A DNA stretch of 63,628 nt, the filler included, from Olpidium bornovanus S191 (lineage: Eukaryota; Fungi; Olpidiomycota), in NCBI GenBank assembly GCA_017911155.1. It is 26 parts of 26 records of this genome, joined end to end, with 100 filler letters (N's around TTAATTAATTAA, not from the genome) between each part and the next. Parts side by side here need not be neighbours in the genome. Positions count along the whole stretch, not along the records: positions 6,273 to 9,815 come from JAEFCI010006343.1; 25 more parts are not named here. One strand, written 5' to 3'. The notes under the pieces are model-generated. The model was given only the letters and a program-made list of their open reading frames with translations, did not search any database and was not told the origin of the DNA. Both the position numbers and the translations under genes were made by a program. Positions within the stretch are counted from its first letter, which is position 1; each line of letters starts with the position of its first letter. This document shows positions 6,274 through 8,839 of this stretch, in pieces.

Positions 6274-6839
6274 ATGCGCGAAGAGTACGTCCGCAAGGGC
6301 GAGTCGAACAGCACGCTGTCGGTCGACGACGTCTACCCGTTCAGCGCGTGCGCGTTCGCGGGGTGGGACTACGGGCTGAGGTCCGCCCGCGCCGGGAAGG
6401 GCCACATGTTCGCCATCGCGACGATCCTCCGGGTACGCGGCGGCTGACAACAACCAACAACAACAACAACAAAAAAAATCCCCCTTGACTCCCCTGACCG
6501 TGGCCCTTCCCCGCACCGCCGCCTGCCCCCTCCGCCCACTCCCCGTCCTCCTTCCCTGCCGCCGGGCGAACCGTTGAACTTCGAGGGCGGGAGAGGGCCC
6601 CGCAGTGAGGGGAAGGGAGGGGAAATGGATCGTTGGGGGGCGCGCGCGCACGCCCCGCCGCCCGCCGCCGCGCGTCCGGACGCCTTTAGAAAGAAAAAAG
6701 CCGGGTTTTGGGAGTCCACCGCGCAATCCGAACTAAATTCTTTTTTTCCTATTCTCGTCTCCCCATTCCTTTTTCTCCCGCCCGTTCCGCCCCGAAACCG
6801 CCCCCCTCCCCGACCCCTCCCCGCGAAATGTTTTTTCTT

Positions 6840-6883
<44 letters not shown>

Positions 6884-6912
6884 CCGGTTTTTTTTCCCCC
6901 CCCCCCCCCCCC

Positions 6913-6984
<72 letters not shown>

Positions 6985-8839
6985 AAACGCGCGCACCCCC
7001 ACCAGACGGTGATCACGCAAGAGGAGCTGAAGGACATGGAACGGCCGCTCACGCGGTCCGAGCGGTTCGCGCTGTTCGGGAGGCGGGCCGCCGTGAACGT
7101 CGTGGTCCTGCTCATGCTGGGCTTCTCGGCGTACACGATCTACCAGACCATCACGCCGACGCCGATCCCGCCAGCGAAGTACATTATGGACGAGATCACC
7201 TCGGCGCTGGCCCAGAAGAACGTGGTGGCGCGGACCTCGTCGTCCCAGCTCACCTCTTGGCTCGTCTCGATCTACAACGCGTGCTTCCCGCTCGTTTTCG
7301 GCCAGCTCGCTCTGCTGGAGAAGTACACCAACCCGCAGTGGGTGATGCGCCTGACCCTCGCGCGGTCGTACGCCCTGAAAATGGGCAGCATCGTCATCGT
7401 GCTGATCGGATCTCAGGTTTGTTTTTTGTAAAATGCAAGAAATTTTCTTTCCCACACCTCCTTCCGCTTGGGGGGCTTCTTTTTGTTATTGCTGTTTCCC
7501 GGCGGGTGTGGTTTTTTTTTGTCTTGGTGCGCTTTCCTACGGGGAAAAAAGGGTTGAACGGATTGCCGGGTTTCTGATTCGCGCCCGGCGCCCTCTCTCC
7601 GTTACTCCCTCTGTGCGGGGAAAAAAAAAAAAAAAAAAAGATGGGCGAAGGCTGGGAAACCAGCCTGGGCCAGACGTTCTACCAGCTTTTCTGGATCAAC
7701 TTCGGCCTTACCATCGTCACGTCGGTTCTCCCGCCGGCGCTGTACAAATGTTTTTTTCGGGCGGAGAAGCCTTTTCAGATTACGGATAACATCCTCGAGC
7801 TCGTATACATGCAAGCCGTCACCTGGTAACGTTTTTTTTCCTTTTTTTTTTTTTTTTTTTTTGTTTTCCCTGGCTTGGTTTTGGGGAGCCGCTCTTACTT
7901 CAGGGCCGGAAAGAGGGGCAGGGAAGGAGGTTCCAACTCCCCACTCCTTATTTTGACCAAGAAGTTATCCGGGCGAACCTTGACCGGCTCTCTCTCTCCC
8001 TTCCTCCATTCCTCACTCTTTACCCCCTCCCCCCTCAAAAACAAAAGGATCGGAACGATGACCGCTCCGATACTTATGGTCTACTCGATATTCACCGGCT
8101 TCATCCCCTTCCACGCCAAAAAGTTCGCCCTTCTGCACTTCCACGAGCCGCCGCGGAGAATATACTCGTCCAGCCTGCAGTCGCTGTTCTTCCTCAGCTT
8201 CATGCTTCTCACGTTCCTGCTCAGTCTGGTGCCGATCATGTACGCCATGGCTTCCTACCCGCCGAGCTGTGGGCCGCACGGGCCTGACGAGGCGCCGTAC
8301 GGCCAGAACAGGACGGCGACGTTCTACCAGGTCATCCCTGAGTGGACGGCGACGCTCAGCGGCACGATCAAGTTCGTCTTCAGCTTCCTGGGCAGCGTCG
8401 CCTTCGTCGCGCCGCTGATCGGCCTGCTGGCCATCTACGTGTACTACCTCCGCGCCGTGGCGTACAAGACCACGACGAAGCTCAAAACTCTGGAGCAGGA
8501 GGTCGCGGCGGTACGGGACGGGGGGGAGAGTGGGGTGTAGGGGTTTTTATTTTATTTTCTTTGTTTTGTTTTTTTTTTGCTCGCCAGGTGTAGTAAAGGA
8601 AGTTCGAGGAGGGGGGGGGGGGAAAACGGGGAAGGGCCGGGGTTCGTGTACCCGCGGCGGCGTTTTGGCGGCGAAAACCGACGCGGGTTGAACCAAAAAA
8701 AATAATGCAAAAAACTTCGTGCCTTCGCGGTCGCCGCCCTTTCCTTCCTCACCCCGCTTTCAATTTTTCTTTTCTTCCTTTCGCGCAGGAACGAGCGGAC
8801 AAGCGGTTCCTCATCCGGTACTACGGAGTCCAAACCTAA
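6274..8839 (+). CDS. Transmembrane channel-like (TMC) family protein, 3' part, 5'-truncated by gap
   Basis: Exons ~6274-6432, 7006-7416, 7641-7825, 8048-8510, 8789-8839 splice in frame. TMC hallmarks: FAGWDY; SIYNACFPLVFGQLALLEKY; RLTLARSYALKM; WETSLGQTFYQL; FQITDNILELVYMQAVTW|IGTMTAP; YPPSCGP; C-terminal ERADKRFL. Confidence 0.88.

Follow-up and report, generated by a model that had tools for sequence, protein, structure and literature searches.

Why should a zoosporic fungus carry a gene of the TMC family, and is such a gene truly its own? In the hearing channel, the pore is made of TMC proteins. The question is raised by a stretch of 63,628 nucleotides (the window, meaning the whole length analysed), which was joined from 26 parts of the genome assembly of Olpidium bornovanus S191 (GCA_017911155.1). 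The genomic piece considered here spans positions 6273-9815 of the window (3.5 kb, from JAEFCI010006343.1), and a first-pass annotation, made from the sequence alone, had read in it a TMC gene at 6274-8839. The piece holds the last five exons, that is, the 3′ part, of a TMC gene, and the encoded protein is a member of the TMC family (PF07810, TCDB 1.A.17.4) and not of OSCA/TMEM63 or the anoctamins. With a probability of about 0.88, we take it to be the 3′ part of a real, transcribed and vertically inherited TMC gene of a zoosporic fungus.

Family Assignment of the Encoded Protein

How can membership in the TMC family be recognized from a gene that is divided into short exons? Searches in Pfam, PDB, the ESM Atlas and a large protein library were run exon by exon, and the spliced protein was used for BLASTP, MAFFT alignments and trees. 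The Pfam TMC domain (PF07810) is found in exon 3 at E 1.4e-6 (29.2 bits against a cut-off of 25; profile positions 2-67) and resumes in exon 4 (profile positions 70-111, 13.8 bits), so that the domain becomes continuous only in the spliced protein. When exon 4 was compared with PDB by phmmer, it met residues 742-871 of Caenorhabditis elegans TMC-1 at E 1e-4 and TMC-2 at E 4e-4. Exon 2 has a weak direct match, in the right order, to residues 334-383 of C. elegans TMC-1, the region of the third transmembrane helix (TM3), and exon 1 searched alone gave chance matches only. A phmmer match of exon 3 to the repeat protein Crov588 in PDB (E 3e-8) was rejected as spurious, being the sum of 18 repeat matches that are each below threshold.

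The relationship was also examined at the profile level. When a profile made of the C-terminal halves of nine fungal homologues and the exons of the window was run at E ≤ 10 on the complete set of PDB sequences, TMC-1 was matched at 2.3e-45, TMC-2 at 4.3e-36 and a 55-residue peptide of human TMC1 (6wud_B) at 0.005. The match to TMC-1 consists of two collinear stretches, 297-452 and 657-897, which lead from the loop before TM3 through TM10. In a feature search of the ESM Atlas with exon 4, TMC clusters made up 29 of the 30 neighbours. The signature motifs of the family (the F.xWDY loop, E.Y after TM4, R..LK in TM5, CWET.xGQ, NxLxxxxxQ..W.G and SCGP) stand in register with those of 28 family members, with the lone exception of a Gly for the near-universal Cys before WET. 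As for the fold, the corresponding part of the homologue from Synchytrium was modelled with AlphaFold, with a predicted local distance difference test (pLDDT) of 65 and a predicted template modelling score (pTM) of 0.52, and in a Foldseek search with this model TMC-2 and TMC-1 came out best (E ~4e-9, TMq 0.55-0.57). Pfam, the PDB profile and the predicted fold of the relative all bear out that this is a TMC-family gene.

Gene Structure and the 5′ Edge

Five plus-strand exons, spliced by script, join in frame to 1269 nt, that is, 422 codons and a TAA stop. All introns have GT..AG ends and all seven motifs quoted in the first-pass annotation (7/7) were found, which upholds its proposal of five in-frame exons with TMC motifs. 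The first exon in the piece (6274-6432, aa 1-53) encodes the cytosolic loop preceding TM3 with the FAGWDY motif; its 5′ side is cut at the piece edge, its frame is open up to the GT donor at 6433, and it is aligned with the conserved block MRxEYV...F.xWDY of fungal and animal TMCs. After intron 1 (6433-7005, 573 nt), exon 2 (7006-7416, 137 codons, aa 54-190) provides TM3, TM4 (..LALLEKY) and TM5 (TLARSYALK..), with hydropathy segments at 80-103, 138-158 and 169-189. Intron 2 (7417-7640, 224 nt) is followed by exon 3 (7641-7825, aa 191-251 and 2 nt more), which holds the first part of the Pfam TMC domain with GWETSLGQ, TM6 and the start of TM7 (FQITDNILELVYMQAVTW). Intron 3 (7826-8047, 222 nt) is in phase 2, and the motif ITDNILELVYMQAVTWIG crosses the exon 3/4 junction, where a Trp codon is split. 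Exon 4 (8048-8510, aa 252-406) completes the TMC domain and TM7 and continues through TM8, the PPSCGP loop and TM9-TM10. Beyond intron 4 (8511-8788, 278 nt), the last exon (8789-8839, aa 407-422, ERADKRFLIRYYGVQT, then the TAA stop) matches the conserved C-terminal EEREDKxxLxRxYxxQT of fungal TMCs and ends at the equivalent place. The GC content at third codon positions (GC3) of the coding sequence is 0.887 versus a GC content of 0.47-0.58 in the introns, which are rich in long homopolymer runs, and this contrast is by itself a strong coding signal.

Is the ATG at 6274, then, the start codon? A contig of a public sequencing run (run X1, record 1) extends 621 nt upstream of 6273, and in every homologue the residue that pairs with the fragment's first Met is an internal one, some 560-1090 aa into the protein. 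Therefore, the ATG at 6274 is not the start codon, and the gene is cut by the edge of the piece. Roughly 550 or more N-terminal residues, including TM1-TM2, lie beyond this edge. Hydropathy gives 7-8 hydrophobic segments in the fragment, in keeping with TM3-TM10. The fragment begins in the cytosolic loop ahead of TM3, passes through TM10 and ends at the natural C-terminus.

Splicing and Transcription

Are these exons really joined in the cell? The piece is found in public runs from five studies under a single organism label, and also in one run of 2012 with a second label. Contigs of four public runs were mapped onto it, with low-complexity and repeat sequence masked, and spliced contigs from two studies (runs X1 and X8) support all four junctions, which shows the gene to be transcribed, and to be spliced as had been proposed earlier. 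For intron 1, record 15 of run X8 joins 6431|7005. Record 3 of run X1 passes both intron 2 and intron 3, joining 7416, 8 nt, and 7649..7824|8047, and its 8 unplaced nucleotides equal in exact length the masked 7641-7648; the intron 2 junction is also supported by record 16 of run X8. Intron 4 is skipped by record 4 of run X1, which joins 8509|8788 over 278 nt with GT..AG ends at a depth of 40.6. Exon 2 is covered by record 3 of run X1 together with records 15 and 16 of run X8. In run X1 the depth is ~40-47 over the exons and ~0 over the introns, except for the first 389 nt of intron 1, where it is ~11. Because intron coverage is lacking, both X1 and X8 were taken as RNA. Run X3 (2012), which extends into introns 2 and 4, looks genomic or unspliced.

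The exceptional part of intron 1 corresponds to an unspliced contig (run X1, record 2, in minus orientation in the record) at 6403-6821, which contains the last part of exon 1 together with 389 nt of intron 1; its depth is about 1/4 of that of the exons. It could come from intron retention, from an antisense transcript or from DNA carry-over. It is also to be noted that introns 2 and 3 have unusual ends. A run of 19 A residues at 7621-7640 stands immediately 5′ of the acceptor AG of intron 2, where there is no polypyrimidine tract, and a T-rich run of ~36 nt (within 7826-7867) comes right after the donor of intron 3; both splices are nonetheless confirmed by the transcript contigs.

Host Lineage and Descent

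From which organism does the gene come? With exon 4 as the query, 1.84 billion representatives were searched exhaustively by HMMER, and 136 matches were obtained at E ≤ 1e-3, with identity of 43% at most. The eight best full-length named relatives all belong to zoosporic fungi, namely Synchytrium endobioticum, Blastocladiella emersonii, Allomyces macrogynus, Paraphysoderma, Rozella allomycis, Catenaria, B. britannica and Coelomomyces, and proteins of animals (mostly labelled 'TMC7'), choanoflagellates, filastereans and Corallochytrium rank lower. In BLASTP with the spliced protein, residues 1-422 align with the C-terminal ~435 residues of fungal TMCs at 31-38% identity (E 1e-61 to 1e-80). A word-index search with the Synchytrium protein returned five proteins only.

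A phylogeny of TMCs, which the first-pass annotation had called for, was computed by maximum likelihood (29 rows, 415 columns, LG+C20). It places the query within the fungal TMC clade with support of 95/93. The Blastocladiomycota form a group that excludes the query at 100/100, Synchytrium is its sister with the weaker support of 81/74, Rozella is basal, and the animals are on the opposite side of the tree. A quick tree built from the full-length sequences likewise puts it in the fungal clade (98). The gene tree follows the fungal phylogeny, which speaks for vertical inheritance and against contamination by an animal or a protist. The host lineage lies outside Blastocladiomycota and is probably chytrid-like.

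A related gene was seen elsewhere. Two metagenome contigs in ENA (L001, 6001-9216, and L002, 3938-7153) carry an intronless TMC gene of 1071 aa (P0142) on a compact, gene-dense eukaryotic contig, where genes for Ras, a protein kinase, DTW and JAB adjoin. In the tree, P0142 and a second sequence, P0023, branch between Rozella and the group of chytrids and blastoclads, and this position suggests an unsampled early fungal lineage with TMC.

Weighing of Alternative Explanations

Could the assignment be mistaken at the level of the family or of the organism? The three families of TMC, OSCA/TMEM63 and TMEM16 (anoctamin) share one fold, and TMEM63, TMEM16 and OSCA entries do appear in the fold search with the Synchytrium model, all at E 1e-3 or weaker, from rank 5 on (TMEM16 at 4e-3 or worse). 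Those values are about six orders behind the E of TMC-1/2. Moreover, neither the exons nor four close homologues have a Pfam match at E ≤ 1 to Anoctamin (PF04547), RSN1_TM, RSN1_7TM or PHM7/PHM7_cyt, the scans of the four full-length homologues give TMC with no domain of the sister families, and in the PDB profile search at E ≤ 10 there were TMC entries only, with no OSCA, TMEM63 or TMEM16 entry. A better match to OSCA/TMEM63 or anoctamin had been set beforehand as the test of the TMC assignment, and none was found by Pfam, profile or fold; that a member of one of these families has been taken for a TMC is therefore refuted. Very improbable, too, is an origin of the contig in contaminating animal or protist DNA. 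In its favour, animals have the largest numbers of TMC genes, and one soil metagenome run has a small share of the stretch. On the other hand, the best named full-length relatives are zoosporic fungi without exception, the query is nested in the fungal clade of a tree that mirrors the phylogeny of fungi with Rozella at its base, and the stretch recurs under one organism label in five separate studies. These results, with the end-to-end alignment to fungal TMCs, bear out the earlier claim of a fungal host gene.

It is also conceivable that the gene is a decaying or non-functional copy. Some constants of the fungal clade are changed, CWE to GWE, EFD to PFQ and YRQ to YMQ, the Cys of CWE being near-universal across the TMC family, and the terminal branch is long (0.81). 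The change of EFD to PFQ was once considered as loss of a pore acid, and this idea was rejected, for other family members have K, N, S or E there, C. elegans TMC-1 having K. Against decay stand an intact frame through five exons with a conserved C-terminus, the high GC3 and the correctly spliced transcripts at the depth of run X1 given above, and we regard such decay as very improbable. The same three departures nevertheless count against the reading of a real, transcribed, vertically inherited TMC gene, together with several other points. The TM5-TM6 loop is ~8 residues shorter than in the fungal relatives. The structural model is that of a relative and not of the protein of the window, and its confidence is moderate (pLDDT 65). 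The N-terminal half of the gene lies beyond the piece. That X1 and X8 are RNA, as they were taken here, is in the records a guess by software as to RNA or DNA. A polyA RNA run of the same species label (X24) had no true reads in the 6% sampled; its matches are only to T-rich low-complexity stretches with foreign flanks, and it was discarded as uninformative on expression. Finally, searches of the literature brought up no work on the function of a fungal TMC, in agreement with the first-pass annotation.

Possible Function

What might a TMC do in a fungus? C. elegans TMC-1/2 are the solved mechanosensory TMC complexes, with CALM-1/CIB and TMIE as partners. By homology with them, the protein would form a dimer whose subunits have the TMEM16-like ten-helix architecture, and TM4-TM7 would line a groove, exposed to the membrane and facing the lipid, through which cations would pass. 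The loop before TM3, encoded by exon 1 and the start of exon 2, resembles the TMC1 peptide in 6wud, which is reported to have been crystallised with CIB3, so an EF-hand partner is conceivable. Ion conduction, any mechanical gating and a part played in the zoospore, a stage without a wall, are inferences only. The first-pass annotation had suggested that the protein could serve zoospores in sensing touch or surfaces. A mechanosensing role is rather unlikely, with a chance of about one in five to one in four, and it is favoured mainly because the only fungi to have retained the gene are those whose motile cells have no wall. The more specific idea, of a mechanosensitive cation channel in the plasma membrane of the wall-less zoospore that would trigger encystment or attachment on contact, is less probable still. 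If it were true, a unicellular fungus would offer a way to study what the hair-cell channel family did ancestrally, before animals.

Another possibility, which deserves serious consideration and comes closer to an even chance without reaching it, is that this genuine fungal TMC is not a mechanotransduction channel; it may instead work as a leak channel or an anion channel, resemble a lipid scramblase, or serve ion homeostasis in an organelle. Such roles have been proposed for TMC4 and TMC6/8 of animals. The nearest named animal matches of the query are labelled TMC7 or Tmc487 and not TMC1/2, and there are changes at conserved positions adjoining the pore helices. In addition, the fungal clade, which groups with a filasterean, a Corallochytrium and one choanoflagellate sequence in our tree and corresponds to the 'Tmc-Y' clade, precedes the duplications that gave TMC1-8 of animals (Erives and Fritzsch, 2020; PMC7003098). 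Because it branches before these duplications, the function in hair cells is not simply transferable. Two facts pull in the other direction: the CIB-binding loop of TMC1 is recognizable at the profile level (6wud_B, E 0.005), and the restriction of the gene to fungi that have motile cells without a wall is in keeping with a sensory role at the plasma membrane.

Intronic and Downstream Sequences

Some features of the piece besides the gene should be described. In intron 1, positions 6842-6983 form a ladder of homopolymers, T42, C19, G33, T6 and A30, which is self-complementary with 57-nt arms at 81% and 34-nt arms at 97%. It could be a long hairpin of the pre-mRNA or a cruciform of the DNA, and equally an assembly artefact of low-complexity words; the ladder was masked in mapping, and no contig spans it. 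Rfam matches at 6822-7020 (miRNA precursors, Phe leader) are far below the gathering scores and were dismissed as noise of a homopolymer hairpin.

Directly 3′ of the stop codon there is a T-rich stretch, recorded as a tandem repeat (8840-8945, plus strand), of low complexity and masked in read mapping, which is presumed to be the 3′ untranslated or terminator region. Positions 9307-9600 are a short dispersed repeat, over which run X3 has a depth of 700-1500 versus 4-36 over the gene. A contig of run X1 matches 9308-9483 with 8 differences and has unrelated flanks on both sides, and one loose end after 9499 is poly-A, similar to a short interspersed nuclear element. The repeat has no tRNA, Rfam or Pfam match. 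Among the open reading frames of 8929-9815 on both strands no Pfam match was obtained, and no tRNA was found there. An open frame of at least 94 codons on the plus strand (9533-9815) runs off the 3′ edge of the piece; it is Arg/Ser-rich, of low complexity and partly overlapping with the repeat, and is probably non-coding or else the start of a neighbouring gene.

Comparison with Known TMC Proteins

Should a TMC in a fungus be a surprise? The first-pass annotation had treated TMC as an animal family, and this view did not hold. Erives and Fritzsch (2020; PMC7003098) reported a single-copy Tmc in Fonticula, Rozella and Blastocladiomycota, and Tmc genes in plants and Naegleria as well; they stated that the gene is absent from all other fungal lineages, and they proposed that rigid cell walls are incompatible with TMC function. 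The Synchytrium proteins, now annotated with a TMC domain, and the present gene go beyond that statement. NCBI and UniProt already label the homologues of Synchytrium, Allomyces, Catenaria, Rozella, Blastocladiella and Coelomomyces as TMC, and that of B. emersonii is named 'Transmembrane channel-like'. Fungal TMCs survive only in lineages with wall-less swimming cells, and with the present gene the chytrid side of the clade gains a transcribed member. As a non-blastoclad member, it extends the published distribution (Rozella, Blastocladiomycota, Fonticula), beside the Synchytrium entries that are already annotated, and it speaks for a gene that was passed down vertically from the ancestor of the opisthokonts and later lost in fungi with walls. 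The known picture is unchanged by it, and its value is that of a further candidate for a functional test.

How, then, does the protein compare with the TMCs of other organisms and with their sister families? The ten-helix fold predicted for it is common to OSCA/TMEM63 and TMEM16/anoctamin, as the fold search with the Synchytrium model indicates, while no sequence-profile similarity to these was detected and their fold scores are far weaker than those of TMC. With the hair-cell channel of mammals, TMC1/TMC2, it has a homologous core in which the loop of the TMC1 peptide is detectable. It differs from that channel, which works with CIB2/3, TMIE and LHFPL5, in that the fungal gene predates the duplications of TMC1-8 (PMC7003098), and the tip-link machinery is not expected in a fungus. 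C. elegans TMC-1/TMC-2 (PDB 7usw/7usx/7usy, 8tkp) share with it the family and, by prediction, the fold, and are its best profile matches and the best fold matches of its Synchytrium relative, but the identity is ~20%, and the long extracellular TM5-TM6 insert and the long tails of the animal proteins are absent in the query. Closest are the single-copy Tmcs of other fungi, namely those of Synchytrium endobioticum (TPX37348.1), Coelomomyces (KAJ1513837.1), Paraphysoderma (KAI9137413.1), Allomyces (KNE69276.1), Blastocladiella emersonii (KAI9178800.1), Catenaria (ORZ31556.1) and Rozella (EPZ36648.1). The query has in common with them the collinearity over 422 residues from end to end, the Pfam domain, the order of helices, the PSCGP loop, the C-terminus EREDK..L.R.Y..QT and the clade. 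It is set apart from them by an identity of 31-39%, with no closer protein in the databases, by GWE, PFQ and YMQ and by the shorter TM5-TM6 loop. It is a further, rather divergent member of the fungal TMC branch already described.

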